Shown here: positions 2,882 to 36,366 of the stretch, piece by piece
How positions within the stretch are numbered: the stretch's first letter is position 1
How the letters are laid out: the number at the start of each line of letters is the position of its first letter
Assembly: GCA_025603075.1 (NCBI GenBank)
Contig: MU626433.1
Coordinates: 1-39,686, forward strand
From: Neoconidiobolus thromboides FSU 785
Taxonomy: Eukaryota > Fungi > Entomophthoromycota
Direction of reading: 5' to 3'
DNA length: 39,686 bases
Made by a program: the position numbers and the translations under genes
Notes under the pieces: generated by a model
Seen by the model: only the letters and a program-made list of their open reading frames with translations
The model's database searches: none
Told to the model about the DNA's origin: nothing

Positions 2882-2981
2882 TGTTTAAAGTGATTTACTA
2901 AATAGGAGTTAAAATTTAGATTATATAAAATTAAATTTATATAAATAAAACTTTACTAATATCTCAATAGTAATTAGAAAT

Positions 2982-3054
2982 GCTCCGTTAGCTCAGTTGG
3001 CAGAGCGTGGTGCTAATAACGCTAAGGTCATAGGTTCAAGCCCTATACGGAGCA
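2982..3054 (+). tRNA. trnI: tRNA-Ile(AAT), copy 1
   Basis: Cloverleaf: acceptor GCTCCGT/ACGGAGC, D-arm GCTC/GAGC, anticodon loop CT-AAT-AA, T-loop GGTTCAAGCC. Confidence 0.95.
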
Positions 3055-3241
3055 TGTATTCTTGATTGTATACATATTTTTTGACTAAATCTATTATCCA
3101 ATCAAAATTCAATAAATATGCTGATTTCATTTTTCTAGGGAACAACTGGTTTGTTTCTTTAATCAAATTTTTATTTTCTACAAGCAACAAAAGAAATAGT
3201 CTATTAAAATAGAGAAACAGAAATCCAAACATATATTTAAA

Positions 3242-10315: not shown

Positions 10316-10389
10316 GCTCGTATGGCGCAATTGGCTAGCGCGTCCGACTGTTAATCGGGAGGTTACTGGTTCGATCCCAGTTATGAGCG
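10316..10389 (+). tRNA. trnN: tRNA-Asn(GTT)
   Basis: Acceptor GCTCGTA/TATGAGC, D-arm GCGC/GCGC, anticodon loop CT-GTT-AA, T-arm ACTGG-TTCGATC-CCAGT. Confidence 0.95.
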
Positions 10390-10995: not shown

Positions 10996-12468
10996 TTAAA
11001 ATCTTAGCGTATTTTCATCATCTTGTGATTTTTCTCCGTTATTTATTTTGGTTTTATTCCTACAAGAATCTGCTGGATTATTATTATTCCTATTAATTTC
11101 AATTGCTTGGTTGATATACTCGTATCCTTCCAATAGCATAACATTTTTCGATCCTTTATTGATACTTTTCAACTCTATAGAATCAGTTGAAATGGAAGAA
11201 TGATGAAACACGAGCTCATTATTAGGTAAAGGGCTTGTTGTATTAATAAAAATGGGATCGGTTAAAGGTTTAGGTAACTGCTTTTTCTTTAGTCTACGTC
11301 TATAAAATATTATAAAAGGTATAAGTAATATGATAATAATTCCAATTGAGCCACCCACTATTCCTCCAATCAACACATTCATGTTGTAGTTATTGTCATT
11401 ATTATCGTCAACTGGCTCTTCTTTTCGATTTTTGACTAATGCTGGCAAAATGCCATCCAGTTCCCAAGTGTTTGTATTAATTAATTGAGTTTTATCCGAG
11501 CTATCTAATTGATTACTTTCATAACCAAAAGAATTGATAATAAAATGATTATAATAAAGTATATTTCCTCCTTCAGCTATTTTATAGTTGATTTTCTTTT
11601 CAATAAATTTGTTTTTATTCAAATCTAATTCATAAATATGGCTTATTTTATTAGATGGAGTAGTTATAAAGTACACCACTTGATCTCCTATTATTATTCT
11701 AGCATACTCCTCGCCTGAAATCTTACTATTTTCCAAATTATGCGATTTTATATCGTAGTTCATTAAATCCATTTCATATAAAACACTATAATTGACTTCA
11801 ATGTAAGTGTTATCAATTGCTTTGGAACTAAAGTAGTAAAGTTTTTCATTTAATAGAAACATCATATCCTTCACTATTGCTGGTAACTTAGTTGTTAATG
11901 TTCTAAAGCTATCTAGTTCATTATCAAATAAAAATAATGGTAAAGGGGTCATAGCTAGAGTACTACTATCATAAATACATAAAGTGACATAGAATTGGTT
12001 AGGGTCCGAAACACTTTGTATAACATTGAGATAGAATTCGTTACCTTTAAAAAGTTGATGAATTTTACTTATCCTCAAAATTTCATCTGTTCTATCTTGA
12101 GTATACCATTTATTCTTCTCAATATCATAACAACTTATTAAAAACTGCTTTTCATAATTAACATAAAAGTTAATGATACTTTTTCTTTTTTTAACATAAA
12201 AGCAATATTGTGAATGCATCTCTAATATATCATTCATTGAACTATATACTTTCCATGGCGCTATCCCCCCTTCTAGTTTAACGTCTTCTCTTAAACTTAA
12301 CCTAAATATTTTATTGTTGTATTTAGTCATTTCCTCCAATTGTGGCAATTGCACTTGGCCACCTAAGCAATAAATTTCATCATCTGCTATTGTACATCCT
12401 CCGGAGGTCATTCGCGGTAGTTGGCAGTTAATCACGTACAATAAAAAATGAAAAATTAATAAAAACAT
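10996..12468 (-). CDS. Type I membrane protein with Kelch/beta-propeller-like ectodomain, 490 aa
   Basis: N-terminal signal-like segment; Kelch-like CTIADDEIYCLGG and YYNHFIINSFG; single TM (GGIVGGSIGIIIILLIPFIIFY) followed by basic RRRLKKK and a cytosolic tail. Confidence 0.75.
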   Translation of the reverse strand: MFLLIFHFLLYVINCQLPRMTSGGCTIADDEIYCLGGQVQLPQLEEMTKYNNKIFRLSLREDVKLEGGIAPWKVYSSMNDILEMHSQYCFYVKKRKSIINFYVNYEKQFLISCYDIEKNKWYTQDRTDEILRISKIHQLFKGNEFYLNVIQSVSDPNQFYVTLCIYDSSTLAMTPLPLFLFDNELDSFRTLTTKLPAIVKDMMFLLNEKLYYFSSKAIDNTYIEVNYSVLYEMDLMNYDIKSHNLENSKISGEEYARIIIGDQVVYFITTPSNKISHIYELDLNKNKFIEKKINYKIAEGGNILYYNHFIINSFGYESNQLDSSDKTQLINTNTWELDGILPALVKNRKEEPVDDNNDNNYNMNVLIGGIVGGSIGIIIILLIPFIIFYRRRLKKKQLPKPLTDPIFINTTSPLPNNELVFHHSSISTDSIELKSINKGSKNVMLLEGYEYINQAIEINRNNNNPADSCRNKTKINNGEKSQDDENTLRF

Positions 12469-13009
12469 TTTGATTTTATAATTGGTATACTTTATGGTTG
12501 TTTATATAGTTTCAGCAAGCGCTTAAAGCAAATTATAAAAAGTGGTTTTGGAGTCGGTGATTATTTTTAGTACCATTTATAAAAAGCAGAGATAAAATCT
12601 ATTAATTTATTATACTTTTATTCTTAGTAAGCACTTGATTTTTTTGTCAAAAATACAAACTAAACTTTAAGCCTATACAATGACACTAGTTTTATGTTTA
12701 TTTTTAATGTATAATAAATTTGAATAAGATTACTGACATGGCTAACTCATCTCTTTATTACAATGGGCTGAATGTTCCACTAACGTAAATAACTGATAAT
12801 TTTAGTTATTCTTTCATTCCAAATATAGCAATTTTTTATATTATCTTAAAATTTGTTACTAGTCTATAATAACTTGGGTTATTCTCGATCCAAGATCAAA
12901 TTTCATTATTTAATAAGCTTCCTGGTACTTAGACTGTTAGACATATAGCTTTGAAACTGCGGCAGTAAAATCTGGTAGTCACCTTTTTATTGTGCTGTAA
13001 CTTATAGCA

Positions 13010-13113
13010 TATGGGGGTGTTTTTTTGACTCCATTACTTTTTCCATTTTTTAAGCACTATTTGAGCGGAAAATTTGTTAGCAAAATTCTTAAACACAAAA
13101 ATACATTCCCATA
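13010..13113 (-). mobile_element. MITE copy (B)
   Basis: TA|TGGGGGTGTTTTT...AAAAATACATTCCCA|TA. Confidence 0.9.
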
Positions 13114-13329
13114 TCCTACTTAATGCCTCAAAGTATGTAGAATTTTATTTTGTTGAGTTATTGTTATTCTCTTTTATTTCATATATAAAATCTTAAATAA
13201 TTAATCCATATTAAATAAGTAAAGTCTATTAAAAATAGTTAGATAATTAGATAGTTATATAGTAAAGAGAGAGGGACAATGCTATAGCTAAACTTAGAGT
13301 AGATTTAGAACCTTAATTTTTTTGGTCAC

Positions 13330-13990
13330 TATGTAAATTGTTACTTCTTATCCATAAAAATACATCTACTCATTGATCCACTTCCCCTTTGAAGACTTCT
13401 TACATCGTTCAACCGATAAAGATCAATATAAAATATCATACCTCCTCCATAATTTCCTATTAGCCTTATAGGATCATTCTCTTAGTAATAACATTGGTCT
13501 TAAATGTTCAGTTGTTCTGTAACGTCTAATGCATGATGCCTTTGCTCCCCTAATCACATTCTTAAAATTCTCTAATACCTTGTCTATTCGCCCCCATTTT
13601 TTTACTGATGGCCATTGGCCTTCACGCTGCTTCTCCAATTGCTCGATATACACTGATTTGTGATGGTACATTTTCTCTGGGATGATCTCTTCAACCTATC
13701 CTCTCACATAAATTTTAGTCTTTAAATCTTTCAAAAAATTTTCATCAAAGTTTTACTTTATCCCACTTTGGTCATCCTTGTTACCAACATAGATTCTAAT
13801 TAGTCCCTATTTTCCTTGATTGGGGCCACTTCTAACGATCAGAGAGTCCAAATAGTACTATCATTGGCTAGTGAAATCCCGTAAAAGTAGTAATGTACTG
13901 GACAAAATAACTTCCTTTCTATGCTAATCCCATCATTGCAATATTTTTAGAGTGTCAGTTATCTGTACATTCATCATCATCTTGATAAAT
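13330..13990 (-). mobile_element. Degenerate retroelement-like relic (possible LINE C-terminal region)
   Basis: ORF 13671-13474 continues in frame past single stops on both sides (...LLLRE*SYKANRKLWRRY...LQRGSGSMSRCIFM), loosely zf-RVT-like. GC-richer than its flanks. Confidence 0.3.
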
Positions 13991-14151
13991 AAAACACTTA
14001 GATGTAAGCCTTTCAAGGATAAAAAGATATCGTACTTTTGATATCTTTATTAACACCAAAAATATCAATAAATAGTAAAAAATCTCTAATATATATTGAC
14101 AAAACATTTAGTTCGAGTTTAAAGGTTCCTTTTAAAATAAAAAAACTAACA

Positions 14152-17840: not shown

Positions 17841-17913
17841 TGCTCCGTATAGGGCTTGAACCTATGACCTTAGCGTTATTAGCACCACGCTCTGCCAACT
17901 GAGCTAACGGAGC
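17841..17913 (-). tRNA. trnI: tRNA-Ile(AAT), copy 2
   Basis: Exact reverse complement of 2982-3054. Confidence 0.95.
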
Positions 17914-24422: not shown

Positions 24423-24638
24423 TTATACTAACATCCCATAGCTTTGTATACAACTAAATTTATAACATCCAAATCTACCTAAAGTAGGATCTTTTCTCCA
24501 ATTAGAACGAATTTGTAAACATCTAGTATTAAGGTTGGAAACTTCAACATCATCAACTGGAGTAGTAGCTGGAGCAGCAGTGCAGAGTTGGAAACTGAAA
24601 GCAGGGATAAGTAAAGTAGAAACGATTTTATTAAGCAC
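24423..24638 (-). pseudogene. Secreted Cys-hairpin peptide precursor, copy 1 (degenerate)
   Basis: Homologous to copies 2-4, but has GTG at the ATG position, the second Cys replaced by Arg, and the stop lost with a 7-residue extension. Confidence 0.7.
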
Positions 24639-25921
24639 TGGGGCTAAAATTACGAGGTTGGTATTTAGTTATAAGAGGGCTGGTATTTAGACTACCTTTT
24701 GTCAGATTAAGAATTATTATTAATAATAAATTAGTAGCTTAGCGATGGTTATTTATATTTGTCGGATTTTGATTTTTGCCTGAAAAAGTATTTTAATTCA
24801 TAAGTGTAGGTATAAGAGCTTATTTTATTCATAAATTATCCTTTGATATAGTAATATCATATTCTGGGAACAACAGGAGCAACAAATTTGAATAGATTCT
24901 AAATGATACAGTCATTCAGTTTCTTATTAGAACCACAGAGAAAACAAAAAATAAACTCAATGAAATTTGACTACGGTTTAAAACAATGAAGTTATTTGTT
25001 TTTTTGTTGATGAATTAACTCAGAGCTTATACATTTATAAAAATATATATTTGTATAATTAAAGTTGTAATTATTATAAATTACGATGAATAAGATTGGG
25101 TTTGATGTTTGTTTATAGCTCAATTGGGTATTAAAGATATTGATTTATAAAAACAATCTCACAAAAATGAACATAGATTACATATGAATACTGCTGTATC
25201 ACTTCTTGATGTAAATTTAATTAAATTTTATACATTACTTGATAAATACAACACCAATAAAATAATAACATTTCATTTCTATTTCGTAAAAATTTAATAA
25301 AAGGGGACAATTTAAATATGATAATTCAAACTATGAATCAAGAAAAATAATAAATTGATGAATTCAGCTTATTTGGTCTTTAAGAAATTTATTTTATTGA
25401 AAAACTTTAAAGTTATACATCCTAATTCCTACATACTTAACAAGTTTCATTCCATTTACGCGGATCAAATTCGCTTATTTATATGAATAACTGATCACCT
25501 TTTGATTATGACCTTCTATTGAGCTCACCTATAAAGTACTTGCTTTTTTTGTTAGATAAAATTACTCTTGAAGCTTCTAATATTAAAATAATACATAGTT
25601 TATGATTGAAGTTCTCTATATATAATACGCATAATAGTTAGTTATATTAAGTAAACTTAGTAGCTTTATTAAATGTTCGAGATATTAGGGAACAATTCAG
25701 TTAAAAAGCCTCGAGTTACTGTGTTCTAAAATCTCTTCTATATTCTGACAAGTATGGATATCAAAACGAGAGAATAATACTCTTTGGGATGAAGCTACAA
25801 ATATCCATAGCAAATTAAACTAAGAGCATGGGATTGATTATCTCTGAATTCGAGAGCACAACAACTTAAATGGTTGTTATGTATTAATCAATCATGGAGC
25901 TGGCAAAACGATATTTCACAA

Positions 25922-26022
25922 TATAAAGATATATTTTTTTAAGAATTTTACTAATAATCCTTTTGCTCAAATAGCATTTGAAGATGTAAAAAATAATGAA
26001 GTCAAAAAAACACTCCTTGATA
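25922..26022 (+). mobile_element. Degenerate MITE copy (A)
   Basis: Core AAGAATTTTACTAATAATCC...CAAATAGC...AATAATGAAGTCAAAAAAACACTCC with eroded TIRs. Confidence 0.7.
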
Positions 26023-26387
26023 TTAGTTTCAGTTACGATAATTTTACTAGATTGATTTATTGTATGTTTAACATAATGTTTTTAATTTTATAGTTCATTT
26101 AATATCATTTTTAAGCTTATAAAATAAAATAGGTAATAATTAACTAGTATTAAATTAATATTTTAATTTATTAGTTATGATATTTAAGTTTAATATTAAT
26201 ATAATATAGTTATATTAAAACAAATTAAATGATAAAAATACTATAATAAAATGATGACAGGAATAAAGTTATCATTAAAATCCAGTTTATAAAACTTACT
26301 AGTAATATTGACTCCAAAATTACTCATTATAAAAAAAAACGCTATATAAATATTTGTTATAGCCCTTGTATCCAACAAGTCTGGTAG

Positions 26388-26460
26388 GCTCCGTTAGCTC
26401 AGTTGGCAGAGCGTGGTGCTAATAACGCTAAGGTCATAGGTTCAAGCCCTATACGGAGCA
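26388..26460 (+). tRNA. trnI: tRNA-Ile(AAT), copy 3
   Basis: Identical to copy 1; followed by a T-run terminator. Confidence 0.95.
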
Positions 26461-26857
26461 TGTGTTTTTTAAATTTTTAATATTTTTCAAAAATCATCAT
26501 ATCAATCTACTTTTTTTTAGCACTTTTATTGACAAAAGAATGAATAAATCATATGAAATATAGACTGTTTTAATTAATAAGTTGTAATTTATAATAGAAA
26601 GGGTTGTTTTTAGCAAAAAGCTTTAATGATTACTACCCACTAACCTTATAAATTGGACTCCATAAAGCATTATGGCTCAATATTAAACCATCAAATAAAA
26701 TTGTTAATACATTAAAATAAAGACACTAGATTAAATGGGACCTTGTATAATAACATTAAAATAAGTAATCAATAATCAATAAGTTGTAGTTTATAAAAAT
26801 ATACTAAAGAGTATAAACAGTAAATTTGTTTATTACCAAGTGGGTATTGGTGACGAT

Positions 26858-27082
26858 TTATTTACATTCAAATTTGTAGCATCTGAATCTACCTAAGGCA
26901 GGGTCATACTTCCATTCAGTACAAAGGATAATACAATTGGCACCGATATCATCAGCTGTAGCTAAGATACTTTTTTCACTGATATCGACTTGGGTACCAA
27001 CTGAAGCATCAGCTGGAGCAGCAGCACAAAGCTGTAAACCAAAAGCGGATACAAGTAAAGTAGCTATGATTTTTTTAAGCAT
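26858..27082 (-). CDS. Small secreted Cys-hairpin peptide precursor, copy 2 (74 aa)
   Basis: Signal peptide ending A-AP, acidic pro-region, then CIILCTEWKYDPALGRFRCYKFECK. TATAAATA at 27185-92; putative 5'-UTR intron 27088-27137. Confidence 0.85.
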   Translation of the reverse strand: MLKKIIATLLVSAFGLQLCAAAPADASVGTQVDISEKSILATADDIGANCIILCTEWKYDPALGRFRCYKFECK

Positions 27083-28742
27083 TTTAGCTAAAGGTATTAT
27101 ATTATTATGTGTTAAATGGTTAATATTAAAATATTACTTTTGATTCTGAGTTAACTTTAATCATTTTTTCAAGTTTGTGGAGCCTATTTATACTCTAATC
27201 GAAATAAGATAGAGTTTGATGTGGACAAACAGAGTTTTATTCTAGAAATATAAAACATCTTCATAATAAACATACTGTAATGATTCATTTATCTTGTATA
27301 TAACCATATGAAATCAGATGAATAGATTAGTTAATAAAACTTAGTAATACTGGTAAATAAGAAATCATTATCTTGATTCAAATGAAGCTATAGGTACAAA
27401 CTGTTGACATTGGTATATATGTTATGGTTCAAATTTATAATTTAACAAGTATATTATTTGATATTTATTATATAGAATATTCAAAACTACTTTGGTTCTA
27501 AGCCCATAAAACAATTTAATACTATACTTAGTATTAGTAGTATTTTAATCTTGAACCATATGAAAGCATGTGTTTCAATATAACAATAAATCTGTTTTAA
27601 CCATATGGAACAAGTAGCTTAGGTTAAAAGCTTTTTTTTAGTTAAGAGTCAATTATAGAATGTCGTTTTTAATGACTTCTATTTAAGTAAATAAAGCTGT
27701 ATAACTTATTCGTAACGTCATTAATTCTGGTAATAAACCTCAAGCATTTATGAACCATTGTTAAATTAATTCTTATTTTGACATTGGCTTGAACTTAACA
27801 TAATATTATTTTACTTGGAACAATCGCTTTAAATATATATGGTTGAAGAATCATGACTACGATATACAGATGTATCGGTTTGTCTATAGGCTAACATTGT
27901 AATATGATAAAAACAAATCATTAAAAGTTACCTTAAATGAATGTTAATGAACAATGAACAAATCCTAAATTCGTTATCCAATTTATAATAAAATAAAGCT
28001 AAAAAAAGATAAATAAACAAATCAAATAAAAAATTAACGAATATCATCGCTTTTTTATCATTATTGTTTTTATCCCACCTATTTTTACGAAGATATTGGG
28101 ATGGAGACAAAGTAAAGAACAAATACTAAACTGGAAGTGGCCTTTTAAATCCAAGGTTTTTTAGTTAATCAATTTTTATGTATTATTATTCAAATTGAAA
28201 TTTTACTAACTCAATATGAAACTTCATAACTAAATGACTTCTGTTTTTATTTAAACATATAATCTCAAAGACATTTTCAATAAATTTGATTAATATGTTA
28301 CTATTATCTCACCACTTTACATCAATTTAGAACTAAGTTTAGTAGTTTTTTATAATACACTTGTAATATAAAGTATAATTATAATAACTTCTAATATATT
28401 ATTTCAATATCTTCCTTGTATTAACATGCATTCAGTTATAAACACAATTGGTCTAAAAAGAATAATTAATTTATCTTTACCATATTTTTATAATACTCAA
28501 AGAATCTAAATGAAACTATTTCTAATGATTACACATTATTTTCTGTCTTGAAGTTTTCTTTTTCTCAGCTTTTAATTTTATGGAAATAAAATCACTGCTG
28601 ATCTTTGGGCTATACATCTTCTGAAAAAGATGTATAGCTTCTATGTTATGTATTCTTAGCAATGGACATGAAGTCACTAACAAAGAATCTAATATAAAAA
28701 TTGGAGAAATTGTTATTTCAAAGTATATCATGTCACTAACTA

Positions 28743-28847
28743 TATGGGGATGTTTTTTTTGACTTCATTACTTTTTCCATTTTTTAAGCGCTATTTGAGT
28801 GGAGAAGCTATTAATAAAATTCGTAAACACAAAAATACATCCTCATA
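28743..28847 (-). mobile_element. MITE copy (B)
   Basis: TA|TGGGGATGTTTTT...AAAAATACATCCTCA|TA. Confidence 0.9.
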
Positions 28848-29049
28848 TCTCTATTGCTAAAGATTGAACGTTAATAAAAGAAATTAATATAGGTAAAGTT
28901 CAAATATCAAAGCACTCGTTCATCGTTAAAGAAAATCATACACTTTGAAGTCGATATTTGATTATGCAAGTTATAAATATAAACAAACTTTCAAAGATAT
29001 TAAGATAAAAAAAGATTTTTATTTAATAAAATATCAAACGATTGTTGAT

Positions 29050-29247
29050 TTATTTACATTCCCATTTGTAGCATCTGAATCTACCTAAAGCTGGATCCAT
29101 TTTCCATTCAGTACAGAGGAGTAAGCAGTTAACGCCGGCATTTGGAGCGGCATCAACGGCATCAACTTGATTAGTAGCTGGAGCAGCAGAGATGAGTTGT
29201 AAACCGAAAGCGGATACAAGTAAAGCAGAAACGATTTTGTTAAACAT
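29050..29247 (-). CDS. Small secreted Cys-hairpin peptide precursor, copy 3 (65 aa)
   Basis: Signal + pro + CLLLCTEWKMDPALGRFRCYKWECK. TATA at 29349-56; putative 5'-UTR intron 29253-29301. Confidence 0.85.
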   Translation of the reverse strand: MFNKIVSALLVSAFGLQLISAAPATNQVDAVDAAPNAGVNCLLLCTEWKMDPALGRFRCYKWECK

Positions 29248-31055
29248 TATAACTAAAGAAATTAGGTTAAAGAGGTTAAATGGCTGATACTAAAGGATTA
29301 CTTTGGATTTTGAGTTAACTTTAATAATTTTGTAGAATTTCTAAACTATATTTATACTCTTACTCAATGTATGATGAAATCTTTACATAGTCGAATGATG
29401 AATTTTAAAAAATATAAAATATCTTTACAATAGACGAATATTGTAACAGCTCATTTAATCTTTATAGAACCATATAAAACCAAAACATCCCCACATGTTA
29501 ATGAAACTTAGTGACATTGGCAAATAATAACTTATTATCTTAAGTTAAAATAAAATATGGCTAAAAACTGTCAATATTGATGTTTATGCTATGGTTCAAG
29601 TATCTAATATAACAGGTATATTCTTTGATATTTATTATACAGTGCATTTGTAAAAAGCTTAGTTCTTAAACAACAACTCGATTTACAACTGTATTTACTA
29701 TTAGTAGTATTTTAGTCTTGAACCATACAAAATTATTTATTTAATAAAAATAAAGCTCTTTAGCTATAGATAACCTATGAGTTATGTCAAAAGTTATATT
29801 TAATATATTCCAAAATTTCAAAATACAAAAATACATCTATCGCAGATATGCACTTTCTTTAATAAATATCTGTTATTAGATAGTTGTCTTTATACCAGTT
29901 TAGAATTGTTGTTCCTATTAAATATATCAAATATGAACTTCACCAGAAAAACTATTTAATATTTATAAATGGATTATGACATTTTATTGAATTAAAAATC
30001 AGCTATAAGTTGTCATCAAAAAAGGCTTTCATGTAGATAAGCTGTGTAATTTATTCTTAATGTCATCGATTTTAAGAACAACCTTGAGTAATTATGAACC
30101 ATTGTTTGATTAATTATCAATTTTGACATAGTTTAAACTCACTATAATATTAGTTTATTTATATCAATTGCTTTGAATATATAGTTAAAGGGTCATAATG
30201 CCAGCTTATAAACCTCTTAGTTAGTTTACAGTCGATATCTATATATAATAAAAATAAAATATCAGAATTTATCTAAACTGAATGATAATTATTAAGCTAT
30301 AAGCTTTTTGTCTAATTTATAATATTATAGTGCTAAAAAAAGATAAATAAACAAATTAAATAAAAAATCAAAGAATACTGTCGCTTTATTGTTATCATTG
30401 TTATTATTGTTTCATCTATTTTTATAAAGATTCTAGAATAGAGATAGATTAAAGGAATAATAATAAAGCAAATATAGCCCTTTAGGATTGAAATTTCCAT
30501 GGTTCACCAGTTTTTTAAAATATTATTATAATAATTGAGCATTTAGTTCTAAACAGTTTGATATTAATTTAAGTATCTAATGACTTTTATTTTCATAAAT
30601 ATATATAACTTTAAAGATATTTCCAATAAAGTTGATTAATATGTTACTATTATCTTACTACTTTAGATCAATTCAAGATTACAATGTTTATTTTATCATA
30701 TTGATTATTAAAATTTAGAACTAAGTTTAGTAGTTTTTTATAATACACTTGTAATATAAAGTATAATTATAATAACTTCTAATATATTATTTCAATATCT
30801 TCCTTGTATTAACATGTATTTAGTTATAAACACAATTGGTCTAAAAAGAATAATTAATTTATTTTTATTATATTACTTTTATCATATTATTTTTATCTTG
30901 TTTGCGAAAGTAACGTGTAGCTCTTTTTGATAGTACCGCTTTATTTTATATGATCGTGTATTTTTCTCTTTCCTAACCTTTTACTTCTATGTAGATAAAC
31001 TCAGTACTAACCTTTGGAATGCACACATCCTGGGAAAGAAGTGTAGCTTTTAGAA

Positions 31056-31155
31056 TATGGGGGATGTTTTTTTGACTTCATTACTTTTTCTATTTTTAAG
31101 TGCTATTTAAGCGGAAAAATTGTTAGCAAAATTCTTAAAAAAATATATCCCTATA
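31056..31155 (-). mobile_element. MITE copy (B)
   Basis: TA|TGGGGGATGTTTTT...AAAATATATCCCTA|TA. Confidence 0.88.
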
Positions 31156-31463
31156 TGCATCTTTAGTAACAGATATTTAAAATTACTAACAGAAAATCCA
31201 ATAAAAAAACTGAAAGAAACTCTATGCTAAAGGATGGGTATGTCAGTATCTATATACTTATTACTAAAAAAAAGACTGAATATGATAAACTTTTGAGTGA
31301 AATAAGTTGTTATAGGTAAAATTCAAATAAAAACATTTATTGATGAAAACCACATTTGAGGTCAACATTTAACTATTTATATAGAAATACAGACAAATAT
31401 TTAAAGGTAATAAATTCGTTAAAGTTTTGTTTTTATTTAATAAAATATCAAACGATTGTTGAT

Positions 31464-31661
31464 TTATTTACATTCCCATTTGTAGCATCTGAATCTACCT
31501 AAAGCTGGGTCATTTTTCCATTCAGTACAGAGGAGTAAGCAGTTAACACCGGCCTTTGGAGCAGCTTCAATGGCATCAACTTGGTTAGTAGCTGGAGCAG
31601 CAGAGATGAGTTGTAAACCGAAAGCGGATACAAGTAAAGCAGAAACGATTTTGTTAAACAT
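31464..31661 (-). CDS. Small secreted Cys-hairpin peptide precursor, copy 4 (65 aa)
   Basis: Signal + pro + CLLLCTEWKNDPALGRFRCYKWECK. TATA at 31699-31706; no 5'-UTR intron evident. Confidence 0.85.
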   Translation of the reverse strand: MFNKIVSALLVSAFGLQLISAAPATNQVDAIEAAPKAGVNCLLLCTEWKNDPALGRFRCYKWECK

Positions 31662-32787
31662 TTTAATTTGATAATAAAAAGTGTAAGTTTCGAAAGTCTA
31701 TTTATACTTTTCAATTTTTTTGTCAAAATATTTGAAATTCTAAGTGTACATATTGTTGATTGACTCATTTACTATTCTTTCATCTATATTACTATTTTGT
31801 TTGATGAACAATAGGCGTAATGAGTTATAAACCGATTACAGTAAAATAAGTATTCTATTGATTATCAAAGAACCTTAAAAGAAATTCATAAAATAAATCC
31901 AAATTAAGTAAGCTGCAATCATAATAAGTTACAACTAACGTCATTGGTGTTTGCTATTTATTATGGTTCAAGTAATTATTTAAAATGTTAATTTTTGCCA
32001 ATAATCTTTAAAATTAAACTAACATATAGCTATTGTTCCATCTATCTTTAACACTATGTTGTTTAGATTCTACATAACATTCGGATAATATTTTATTATT
32101 ATTATAAAAACACTAATGTTCAATTCTATTTAGTTAAAATAATAAAACGGAAAATTATTTGAAATATAACTAAACCTCAATTTATGATATTAATAGAAAT
32201 AATAATGAAATTAAAGTATTAAGTCTTTTGAAAATACATTAATTAATATAAAGTAAATGGTCTAGAATTTAATTTCTTTTATCATATATATGACAGTCAA
32301 CTATAAATGGATTATCTAAGCTATTCATTGATTTTCAAATAGATAAATTATTTTCTCAATATAGTAGAAATTTTCGCTATAAGACTAAAGAACTGATTTG
32401 TTCATAAACAGATTTTTAATAACTTTATAGTAGATATTAATGTTTATCATTAAATTTGTATATCGAATAGTTAGTTTTACAAGTAGCTAAAAATCTCATA
32501 AAGTCCGGCTTTTTATATCATGTTAATTATTTTCGTTTGTTATAGTAATAATAAAATTGTTTATATTTTTGAGTATACTTTGGTTTATTTAATTGTTTTA
32601 TTTTCTCTTTACTCTGAGATGCTGTTATTTATAAGATTTTTATGTCATTGATTACTTACGAATAATTGATAAATTTTATAATTAAAGTATATATTTGTAG
32701 TATTTTATTATTATTATAAAGTTATTTTCATTGCTATTTGAAATCAATAGTCAAAGTGGGAGTTGTGATCCTAATAATAGAAAAAGA

Positions 32788-32892
32788 TATGGGAGTGTTT
32801 TTTTCGGCTTCATTATTCTTTCCATCTTTTAAGCGCTATTTGAGTGGAAAACTTGTTAGTAAAATTCTTAAACAAAAAAATATATCCTCATA
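32788..32892 (-). mobile_element. MITE copy (B)
   Basis: TA|TGGGAGTGTTTTT...AAAATATATCCTCA|TA. Confidence 0.9.
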
Positions 32893-33016
32893 TAACTAAA
32901 ATAAAAAAAACTATATAAACTGTATAGTAATTTAAGGAGTTATTGAGCAATGCGATTAGGTAAAGGTATCATAATAAAGTTAATAAGATTGTTATAATCA
33001 TTAAAGCATTAAGATT

Positions 33017-33117
33017 TATGCAATGTGTTTTTCGGTTTCATTACTTTTTCAATTTCTAAGTAATGTTGAGTAGAAAAAATGATAGTAGATTTCTTAAACA
33101 AAAGAGACATCCTTAAT
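33017..33117 (-). mobile_element. Degenerate MITE copy (B)
   Basis: TATGCAATGTGTTTTTCGGTTTCATTACTTTTTC...TTCTTAAACAAAAGAGACATCCTTA; diverged core. Confidence 0.7.
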
Positions 33118-33447
33118 ATTTTATTTAATTGAATATTTTTACTATTTTTATAAAATAATTACTATTTAAAGAAGTTGATTTATATTTTGTAGTTTTATGA
33201 AATAAACTACTGTTTTTCTCCGTATTTTTCATTTTAAAATAAAAATAATAGTTATTTATTAATTAAATGTATAAGCTGTATTAAAAACTTGAATAAAAAC
33301 CCAATAAACTCCCCCAAATATAAAAAGAGAGAATCTAAATGTAATTACTGCAGCTCATAATGTAACAAATTGACTAATCAAAGGCTAAAAAACTTAAGGC
33401 TCAGTAACCATGATTTGTTGTAATTCAACAAATGAGATCTCTTTTTG

Positions 33448-33514
33448 TTAGGGTTAGAGTTAGGGTTAGAGTTAGGGTTAAAGATTAGGGCTAAGATTGA
33501 GGCTAGAGTTAGTG
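33448..33514 (+). repeat. Telomere-like hexamer array (TTAGGG/TTAGAG alternating, then decaying)
   Basis: TTAGGG TTAGAG TTAGGG TTAGAG TTAGGG TTAAAG A TTAGGG CTAAGA TTGAGG CTAGAG TTAGTG. Confidence 0.75.
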
Positions 33515-33844: not shown

Positions 33845-34938
33845 ATGAAAAGAACAGTTGAAGTGTCCGAATTACTTCAATTAAGTCATAATAACTTCAA
33901 AAAGTTTATGGTAGTTATCAATGATTCATTAAAAAATAAAGGAAAAGATATAATGGAAAGAGGAAAGATAATAATGTCCATAAACGCCAAATGGAAACAT
34001 TCTAAAGCAGTTAAAGACATGTTGCAAAATCAAACCAAAATTACTGAAGATAAAGAAGATGTCGATATATTTGATCAAATAAAACAACAACTGAATAAAC
34101 AAAAGAAGGAAAAAATGAAAAAAAGTGATAAATTAAAAATATTAGAGAACAAAATGAAAGATGATAATTTAGAGGAAGTAAGAAAGGATATTTGTAAGTG
34201 TAGTAATAGTAGTAAATTAAATAATGACTATAACGAGTTTTAGATGATGAAGCCTGTTCTTCTAAGCACCAAGTCTTATTGAAGAAATCAACACTTATTA
34301 ATGATATTAATGAAGATGAAAAAATGGATAAATTAATTGAAGAAAAAATGGATAAATTAATTGAAGAAAAAATAGATAAATTAATTGGGGAAAAAATAGA
34401 TAAATTAATTGGGAGAAAAAAAGAATCAAACAACGCTAGTAACAGTATAAATATAAAGAATCGTGACAAATCAGTAACATTAACTAAACAAAATATAAAG
34501 AGTATTTTAAGAAGCGAACACATTGATAGTTTAAAGGAAAACCCGACCCAAATAGAAAATAGCTATCAACAGGGGCTGAAGGATAGTTCTAGTTATGCAT
34601 CAGAGTGGGCAACTAATTGGGAAGCTACGGAAGAATTCGATATAAAGAGAATTACCATTAAAGATAAAAATTTACAAAATGAACATACATTTAATAATGA
34701 AATAGAGACTATCAAAAGATATAATCCTAAAAGGTATTTAGAGCATAAGAAATCTAAGCTTCTGGATTTAAATTATAACGATGTTGATTTAAATGTTAAT
34801 CAACCCATTAGTCCAGGTCGTACAATCCTATCACTTCATCATAATAATAAAAGAACATTGGAAGTTGAAAAGGAAACTGATGAAAGGTTGGAAAAACAAC
34901 ATTCAAAGAGAAGGCTTGATAGATCAGGTAAAAAATAG
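33845..34938 (+). CDS. Orphan 347-aa protein, paralog of the 14856 gene; join(33845..34193,34244..34938)
   Basis: A 50-nt GTAAGT...TTTTAG intron (34194-34243) joins the two listed ORFs in frame. Confidence 0.8.
34318..34413 (+). repeat. Coding minisatellite, 4 x 24 nt (EK[MI]DKLI[EG])
   Basis: GAAAAAATRGATAAATTAATTGRR repeated four times. Confidence 0.92.
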
Positions 34939-35167: not shown

Positions 35168-35631
35168 TCTGTTTATATTGATATACCTTTTTTATTACAT
35201 TTGGTATTTATACTATACTGTTACCATTCTTTTAGAGATGATCAAGTATGGTAAATAGCCTATCATTATTATATTAATATAAAAATTATCAATAATGATA
35301 AACATCATTTTATTTTTAACTTTATTAACCATATAATAGATATTCAACTTTAATATAACTTCTATATATTTTATTTAAAATAAACCAACTACGTATGTAT
35401 TTAAACCTAAATTAATAGCTTTAAAATACTCACCATTACCATACTTACAATGTGATAAAATAACGACTACCAATACAAATGAAATGTCAGCAAAAATCCG
35501 TACCTTTAAAATTAATAAATACAACAAATAGCTGAAGGCAAAAGCATTGCTAACAATCACCACTGTCTTTAAAAGTTAATTTAGTAAATATTAATTATTT
35601 TTAATCAATAATATCAACAGTGATTAGAGAT

Positions 35632-35704
35632 GCTCCGTTAGCTCAGTTGGCAGAGCGTGGTGCTAATAACGCTAAGGTCATAGGTTCAAGCCCTATACGG
35701 AGCA
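35632..35704 (+). tRNA. trnI: tRNA-Ile(AAT), copy 4
   Basis: Identical to copy 1. Confidence 0.95.
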
Positions 35705-36366
35705 TAACTCGTCGATAGCGACGAGCCCCTGTTTTGCTAAACAAATATTAATTAATATATGAGTTTTATAAAATAATATACTTTCAATCTTAATATTATA
35801 ATAAAATTACAGTATAACATTTACTTTATATTTGATAGAAATTAAATTTAGCCAATAAAATAAATGATTTTATACTATTGAAAGCTTAATTTTTTAATAA
35901 AAAATTCATAATAAAATAATATAAACAGCTATATTTGAATATTATGGCATGTGGGCTAATCAGAATAAAGAAACATATTAGACTCACCTTAGTGTAAAAA
36001 CTCTTAATACTTTAAAAACAGATTTAATTAATTAGTTTTATGTTAAATTTGCCTTATCAGGAAATTAACTGTCAGTAAAATGGGTATTGATCATAGTTTG
36101 TAATAAGGATTCCCTATACTATGAAAACTCTATAAAATAAAGTAACATTTAATTAAATATTACTAAATAACTTACTAACTGAAACTCCACCCCTGTGATT
36201 ATACGGCGTAAGCTAAGAAAGTTTAATAGTTAAAAAAGTACTCTTTTACATTAATCTGTTTGTTCCTAATTTACTTTTAACTCATTTATTAATGTTATTC
36301 AAATATGAGTAACTATAAAAAAACATAATTAGTCATGAAATGTAAAAAAACAAGTTCCATAAAAAA

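Follow-up and report, generated by a model that had tools for sequence, protein, structure and literature searches.

An unannotated tandem array in the fungus Neoconidiobolus thromboides encodes abundant transcripts for a new family of candidate secreted disulfide peptides

A tandem array of small genes for candidate secreted disulfide peptides was found between positions 24,423 and 31,661 of a 39,686-nucleotide (nt) stretch of DNA from Neoconidiobolus thromboides FSU 785 (Eukaryota; Fungi; Entomophthoromycota; GenBank assembly GCA_025603075.1, contig MU626433.1, positions 1 to 39,686 of the forward strand; hereafter the window). The array comprises four related open reading frames (ORFs), c1 to c4, which probably represent three intact genes and one decayed copy, c4 being a probable pseudogene. 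Genes c1 to c3 are expressed at very high depth as short polyadenylated messenger RNAs (mRNAs) of ~300 nt, one of which is spliced in its 5' untranslated region (UTR). Their products are predicted to carry a signal peptide, a variable acidic linker and a conserved four-cysteine core, for which we tentatively favor a role in extracellular defence.

The peptide array is real and far beyond what chance would produce. All four ORFs lie on the minus strand and can be aligned end to end, with full-length identities to c1 of 94% (c2), 69% (c3) and 52% (c4), and the DNA of the array is itself repeated, successive repeats starting 2444, 2165-2192 and 2414 bp apart. When the entire 24.6-Mb assembly (799 contigs) was searched in six frames with a profile, exactly c1 to c4 were matched, with E values of 1e-36 to 1e-41. 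The window has a G+C content of ~26%, as AT-rich eukaryotic DNA. An earlier sequence-only reading of this DNA had proposed four minus-strand paralogs sharing a conserved C-x3-C-TEWK-x-DPALGRFR-C-YK-[W/F]-E-C-K domain. Its coordinates, strand and alignment are borne out, but only three copies are intact, and the domain is that of these three copies, whereas in c4 the second Cys is an Arg and other core residues are substituted as well. The same reading had named a lack of transcripts as evidence that would count against it, but c1 to c3 are covered by deep, polyadenylated and spliced RNA contigs.

In six public runs from three studies, 7-19% of the words sampled from the 5.1-kb stretch 26700-31800 are present, a share that is expected for transcripts and not for genomic DNA, so that these runs were read as RNA. 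Although the run type was otherwise guessed, the tails, the splice and the confinement of coverage to genes all argue for RNA. RNA-type contigs from four of the six runs were examined over 26700-31800, which covers c1, c2, c3 and their spacers, with c4 lying outside. The summed contig depth over the three coding regions was 1.4e4-3.5e4 in the contig set X1 and 1.5e5-3.3e5 in X2 and X3; most spacer bins had a depth of 0-50, and the higher bins coincided with or adjoined a dispersed repeat and a 163-nt block, both described below. The signal can be assigned to individual copies: c1-specific contigs with 0 mismatches reached a depth of ~12,000-14,000 in X1 and ~1.5e5 in X2 and X3, a c2-specific contig (29105-29196, 0 mismatches) had a depth of 25,000, and the depth over c3 reached 3.3e5. 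Poly-T loose ends just before 26814, 29000 and 31415 mark poly(A) tails 44-50 nt past the three stop codons. Moreover, a joint from 27087 to 27138 (CT..AC on the plus strand, equal to GT..AG on the minus strand) excises 50 nt, in exact agreement with the intron predicted in c3. Since contig depth reflects expression poorly, we describe the transcripts as very abundant and claim no expression rank. Independent support for this abundance comes from codon usage, as the fraction of NNC codons is 0.53-0.65 in c1 and c2, compared with a range of 0.09-0.25 for six other ORFs in the window, a bias typical of highly expressed genes. Strain differences in the runs fall in the linker, one being synonymous in codon 38 of c1 and the other changing Asp32 to His in c2. 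Separately, at a depth of 93 as against ~14,000 over the gene, one contig links 31404 to 31484 with GT..AG borders on the plus strand, which could reflect a spliced antisense transcript at the 3' end of c1, or else an assembly or template-switch artefact.

Despite this transcription, the c1 to c3 peptides were missing from NCBI nr by exact look-up, while two neighboring proteins of the window were present. Three genes that seem to rank with the most heavily transcribed ones of this fungus are thus absent from its public protein set, and secretome surveys of early-diverging fungi that use annotated proteomes would miss them, and probably similar families too. No relative was found elsewhere. 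HMMER, run exhaustively as a profile search over 1.84 billion protein representatives, gave 0 matches at E up to 0.001, and Pfam at E up to 10 returned only noise, solely on c4. Sequence search of the PDB, a word-based protein search, and searches of JGI metagenome contigs and of bacterial and archaeal genome contigs (185,579 genomes) recovered no relative, and the best score of an ESM Atlas feature search was 0.77, under the useful range. The term orphan here means without a relative among predicted proteins, which does not prove absence, as other fungal genomes were not covered as DNA; because annotation missed the genes in this genome, orthologs in related fungi have possibly been missed likewise.

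The intact precursors are 65 amino acids (aa) long in c1 (31464..31661) and c2 (29050..29247), as defined by ORF, alignment and copy-specific contigs, and 74 aa long in c3 (26858..27082), as defined by ORF, alignment and RNA depth, with the c3 linker being longer and more acidic. Each N-terminus has the n-h-c layout from which a signal peptide was read: a basic n-region (MFNK or MLKK), an h-region of 15 hydrophobic residues with a mean Kyte-Doolittle value of 1.8-2.2, and a c-region of small residues (ISA or CAA) followed by AP. In c1, this putative signal peptide takes up codons 1-21 (31599-31661, minus strand). Cleavage after residue 21 would release a peptide of 44-53 aa, in which a variable tail, mildly acidic and probably disordered, is joined to the conserved core. 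The tail corresponds to a linker of 19-28 aa that is rich in Ala, Pro, Thr and Asp and has a net charge of -1 to -4, and neither a dibasic nor any other recognised processing site was found in the linker of the precursor sequences, which lends no support to the pro-region proposed by the sequence-only reading. The core, placed by alignment at 31467-31541 in c1, 29053-29127 in c2 and 26861-26935 in c3 (all minus strand), has 25 aa, ~3.1 kDa, a pI of 8.5 and a net charge of +2, with a cysteine spacing of C-x3-C-x13-C-x4-C in the three intact copies.

Core and linker differ markedly in their pattern of substitution. Between c1/c2 and c3, the ratio of nonsynonymous to synonymous substitution rates (dN/dS) is 0.15-0.16 in the core, at a dS of 0.6-0.8, and 0.7-1.0, near neutral, in the linker. 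Although the counts are small, the contrast is clear and points to purifying selection on the core and a linker free to vary. Furthermore, all nine nucleotide differences between c1 and c2 are clustered, six in linker codons 26-38 and three in codons 50-51, with codon 50 changing by two nucleotides from AAT (Asn, c1) to ATG (Met, c2). Residue 50 is Tyr in c3 and Lys in c4, and is the sole core position that differs in every copy, a pattern suggestive of single-site diversification, albeit in few sequences.

Structure prediction places this variable residue near the tip of a hairpin. AlphaFold2, supplied with an alignment of only four rows, predicted strands at residues 41-51 and 55-64 of the full precursor, with a predicted local distance difference test score (pLDDT) of 69-76 there and <50 elsewhere. 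In the best model of the signal-cleaved peptide, strands were predicted at 43-51 and 56-64 (precursor numbering) with a pLDDT of ~85 and a disordered N-terminal tail, the five mature-only models ranging in mean pLDDT from 45 to 68. Both runs agree on a beta-hairpin of two strands that turns at P-A-L(-G) within D-P-A-L-G, so that this fold is moderately supported as a model, and the disulfides would presumably pair C41 with C64 (outer) and C45 with C59 (inner). The two runs are one residue apart in strand register, and neither sets both cysteine pairs directly opposite each other. Consistent with strands, the hydrophobic moment of strand 2 is larger at beta than at helical periodicity (0.54 versus 0.14), and this strand is amphipathic. 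One face of the hairpin would carry L42, L44, W48, R56, R58, Y60 and W62 and the opposite face the cysteines and Glu/Lys pairs, an arrangement that depends on the register. In the models, residue 50 is exposed beside the predicted turn. Comparison of the AlphaFold2 models with the PDB by Foldseek (best E 4.6) and a wide VIA-align search (best Z 2.2) gave only generic hairpin overlaps, and an ESM Atlas fold search gave template modelling (TM) scores below 0.5.

Taken together, we lean, with less than even confidence, towards reading these products as extracellular binding peptides used for defence, against either competing microbes or the insect host. In such a mechanism, the signal peptide would be removed after residue 21 to free the 44-53-aa peptide, the core would fold into a rigid amphipathic beta-hairpin held by two disulfide staples, and the fungus would export it in large amounts. 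The hairpin might then bind an extracellular target through its aromatic and cationic face and its tip, and thereby act against rival microbes or the insect host, with gene duplication diversifying tip and linker on a conserved scaffold while the fourth copy decays. A wider proposal, possible but doubtful, is that these are the first disulfide-stapled beta-hairpin defence peptides from a fungus: a scaffold without relatives, missed by annotation although its transcripts would rank with the most abundant ones of an early-diverging fungus pathogenic to insects, whose copies are retargeted by a single tip residue and which may either bind microbial or host targets or, mimicking the potato inhibitor I loop, function as a minimal inhibitor of proteases. 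Small rigid disulfide peptides are valued as scaffolds for antibiotics, insecticides and inhibitors; at 44-53 aa with a 25-aa core, these peptides would be easy to synthesise, and the three natural tip variants offer a ready-made specificity experiment.

Several points weigh against the defence reading. Activity, secretion, cleavage and disulfides are all predictions. The strand registers of the two structure runs disagree, the alignment behind them is shallow and the confidence of the mature-only models is uneven, and with C-x3-C facing C-x4-C a bulge is needed to build a two-rung disulfide ladder. The net charge is low (+2 for the core and -2 to +1 for the signal-cleaved peptide) and Lys is not rarer than Arg, unlike in typical membrane-active hairpin peptides. 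Whether a run is RNA or DNA, its growth conditions and its species label are coded or guessed, and contig depth is a poor proxy for expression. Finally, high expression is equally compatible with a structural role.

Such a structural role is the basis of one alternative, in which an abundant amphipathic hairpin would coat the hyphae or the forcibly discharged conidia, or help them adhere to the insect cuticle, a task performed in Dikarya by hydrophobins and similar small cysteine-rich proteins. The extreme depth in all three studies containing the genes and the amphipathic strand 2 are in line with this function, and no hydrophobin Pfam family was detected in the genome, a weak negative that leaves absence unproven. 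Other fungal families of secreted small proteins rich in cysteine are also described as surface-active (PMC8596622). We nevertheless consider a surface coat quite unlikely, as the peptide is hydrophilic overall (grand average of hydropathy -0.03 to -0.29) with only a small hydrophobic patch, its 25-aa core is far below the size of known surface-active fungal proteins, and the diversifying tip residue would be left unexplained. In another alternative, the hairpin would be a canonical, substrate-like serine-protease inhibitor whose reactive-site loop at the tip carries residue 50 (Asn, Met or Tyr; Lys in c4) as P1 and Asp51 as P1', with Arg56 and Arg58 bracing the loop from P6' and P8'. The paralogs would then block different proteases, whether immune or digestive enzymes of the host, those of competitors or the fungus's own. 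Residue 50 is predicted to be exposed next to the turn and is the only core position to differ in all copies, taking up two of just three nucleotide changes between the c1 and c2 cores. In addition, potato-I-like exons of the same genome read [M/L/F]-D-x4-R, matching the P1-Asp-x4-Arg part of the spacing. Still, this inhibitor function is unlikely in our judgement: the peptides have no similarity to potato inhibitor I (no Pfam match, hhalign probability 0.1%), P2 is Lys where Thr or Pro is usual, Asn is unusual as P1, the loop between the inner cysteines has 13 residues as opposed to the nine of the Bowman-Birk and sunflower trypsin inhibitor (SFTI) loop, and the motif match was spotted post hoc in only three or four sequences.

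A secreted signalling peptide, acting on the fungus itself or manipulating the host as a ligand that contacts its receptor through the hairpin tip, would also suit a small, secreted-type product with a predicted rigid scaffold and a variable tip. However, peptide signals of this sort are seldom produced at comparable depth, no receptor or processing genes lie near the array, and no precedent was found for this fungal group, which together make such a role very improbable. That the four ORFs are chance frames, or an exon of a larger gene, might be suggested by the missing entries in the public protein collection, yet this possibility is close to negligible given the discrete polyadenylated transcripts ending 44-50 nt past the stops, the TATA box and spliced 5' UTR just upstream, the low dN/dS of the core (0.15) and the strong codon bias.

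The transcription units can be described in some detail, all on the minus strand. In c3, sequence signals place a TATAAA at 27187-27192, and the 50-nt GT..AG intron of the 5' UTR (27088..27137, GTAAT...TTTAG), supported by the RNA joint in X2 and by sequence, ends 5 nt before the ATG; a 3' UTR of ~44 nt (26814..26857) runs to a poly(A) site near 26814, marked by a poly-T loose end in X2. In c2, the TATAAA lies at 29351-29356, and a 49-nt 5' UTR intron (29253..29301, GTAAT...TTTAG), likewise ending 5 nt before the ATG, is predicted by homology to the c3 intron, the RNA joint being listed for the c3 intron only; its 3' UTR of ~50 nt (29000..29049) extends to a poly(A) site near 29000, defined by loose ends in X2 and X3. 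Copies c2, c3 and c4 have in common a TATAAA ~110-120 nt upstream and a 5' UTR intron of 49-52 nt. At the edge of the array, c1 has an upstream region (31662-31920) that is unrelated to those of the other copies and has no 5' UTR intron, with a TATAAA 45 nt upstream of the ATG (31701..31706); despite this unrelated region, c1 is transcribed at a depth similar to that of the other copies. Its 3' UTR of ~49 nt (31415..31463) reaches a poly(A) site near 31415, again seen as loose ends in X2 and X3. The duplication boundary at c1 falls within a few nt of the ATG.

The fourth copy, c4 (24423..24638, minus strand; 71 aa if read from GTG), retains the intron-like stretch (24644-24695) and the TATAAA (24752-24757) recognised by sequence signals. 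Its ATG has become GTG with no in-frame ATG upstream, its second Cys is replaced by Arg alongside other core substitutions, and its stop codon is lost, extending the frame by 6 aa. Moreover, its dN/dS is raised to 0.65-0.76 versus c1/c2 and its codon bias is fading. The lost ATG, Cys and stop codon, the raised dN/dS and the fading codon bias are the reasons for which c4 is read as a probable pseudogene.

The neighbors of the array are genes for a GHMP kinase, an F-box protein and an S-adenosylmethionine (SAM) decarboxylase. Over a length of 237 nt that takes in the 3' UTR, copies c1 and c2 share 96% identity, whereas the homologous spacers are only 74-83% identical, which suggests gene conversion or very strong constraint. 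A 163-nt non-coding block (28324-28486 and 30712-30874) is 97% identical across two spacers whose surrounding sequence is 74-83% identical. It is unique to the array in this genome, has no Rfam match and contains no ORF of at least 40 aa; it could have arisen by gene conversion or act as a conserved regulatory element. A dispersed repeat of ~107 bp is present in the window at 28742-28853, 31054-31165, 32787-32898 and 33028-33080, and genome-wide it gave 55 scored matches, with identities of 77-100%, as well as 3879 first-look candidates, some of them locally clustered; it resembles a miniature inverted-repeat transposable element (MITE) or a short interspersed nuclear element (SINE). RNA contigs on this repeat explain part of the spacer depth, and as they continue into unlike sequence on both sides, they are attributed to transcribed repeat copies located elsewhere.

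Four genes for the transfer RNA (tRNA) tRNA-Ile(AAT) lie in the 40-kb window (2981-3055, 17841-17913, 26388-26460 on the plus strand and 35631-35705), the third of which sits within the array between c4 and c3, and a tRNA-Asn(GTT) gene lies at 10316-10389. Just past the peptide array, 33447-33512 is a short interstitial telomere-like array with the unit GTTAGG degenerating to a 12-mer. In addition, a 24-nt tandem repeat (34318-34421; 4.3 copies, 93% matches) within the ORF 34279-34938 encodes a repeated heptad-like motif of the DKLIEEK type.

The peptides were compared with known classes of small peptides, and the searches described above agree with the sequence-only reading that this is an unrecognised family of secreted type, with no match in Pfam, the PDB, ESM Atlas, HMMER or fold searches. 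Also upheld is its observation that the precursors have no dibasic Kex2 site and the array no tailoring neighbors, its neighboring genes being those named above. Ribosomally synthesised and post-translationally modified peptides of the dikaritin, borosin or amatoxin types were rejected, because each precursor has one core and no dibasic or flanking protease sites, and the neighbors are non-tailoring. The analogy that had been drawn with defensins is not supported, as the four-Cys core is predicted to form a bare beta-hairpin and not the cysteine-stabilised (CS) alpha/beta fold. The array peptides resemble AFP/PAF and plectasin-type defensins as small, abundant, secreted-type and Cys-stabilised fungal precursors that bear an N-terminal extension in addition to a signal peptide. 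Those proteins, however, have 6-8 Cys, a five-strand barrel or CS-alpha/beta fold and cleaved pro-peptides, compared with four Cys here, and CS-alpha/beta defensins were set aside on the cysteine number and the lack of any Pfam, PDB or fold match. The strict gamma-core motif (G-x-C-x3-9-C) is not present in the peptides. Hydrophobins (PF01185, PF06766) were likewise rejected, having an eight-Cys pattern as opposed to four Cys, with no Pfam match.

Alpha-hairpinins are plant peptides with the pattern C-x3-C-xn-C-x3-C, some of them antimicrobial and others trypsin inhibitors with the reactive residue in the loop. They share with the array peptides four Cys in two close pairs with a loop of ~13 residues between them, but the second pair here is C-x4-C instead of C-x3-C, and both AlphaFold2 and the hydrophobic periodicity favor strands, for which reasons this class was rejected. 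The Bowman-Birk/SFTI-1 loop is a nine-residue loop closed by a disulfide, C-T-P1-S-x-P-P-x-C; it was excluded because the inner loop here has 13 residues and no Ser-x-Pro-Pro. In the reactive loop of potato inhibitor I proteins (eglin c, CI-2, rBTI), P1' is acidic and P6' and P8' are conserved loop-bracing positions (PMC3115953), and all intact copies of the array show a similar x50-D51-x4-R56-F57-R58, a short motif noticed post hoc. Homology to potato inhibitor I was rejected, given the lack of a PF00280 match (E up to 10) and an hhalign probability of 0.1% against the PF00280-like exons of the genome; in addition, the array peptides have no alpha/beta core and have different predicted disulfides, which leaves the short loop motif as the sole lead in this direction. 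These exons are four exon-sized frames (C243:8428-8520, C647:78-167, C191:5941-6054 and C47:9553-9639) that match the reactive-loop half of the PF00280 profile at 18-22 bits, just under the cut-off, and probably belong to genuine intron-containing genes for small protease inhibitors.

By architecture, the closest class is that of the beta-hairpin host-defence peptides, such as tachyplesin, gomesin, arenicin-3 and alvinellacin. According to a 2026 review, members of this class have 11-25 aa, are cationic with Arg preferred over Lys, contain at least two Cys pairs at least three residues apart, and are reported only from animals and plants (PMC13001179). Different from these peptides, the array peptides come from a fungus, have no sequence similarity to the class, an inner loop of 13 residues versus 4-9 and a second pair of C-x4-C. 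The core is at the top of the class's size range, the signal-cleaved peptide being longer at 44-53 aa with no recognised site for removal of the tail. The spacing C-x3-C-x13-C-x4-C of the three intact copies has the Cys pairs that define the class, whereas the core, with two Arg and three Lys, departs from it in composition and charge. Because of these charge and Arg/Lys differences, and because the long tail may stay on the peptide, the core was not filed as a member of the class. In its features the family departs from every named class compared, and we regard it as a new sequence family belonging to a kind that is already known in general, the small secreted disulfide-stabilised peptides. 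With the beta-hairpin defence peptides it nevertheless shares a single predicted hairpin, two Cys pairs of which the first is C-x3-C, a core rich in Trp, Tyr and Phe and in Arg and Lys, and a precursor made up of a putative signal peptide and a non-conserved N-terminal part.

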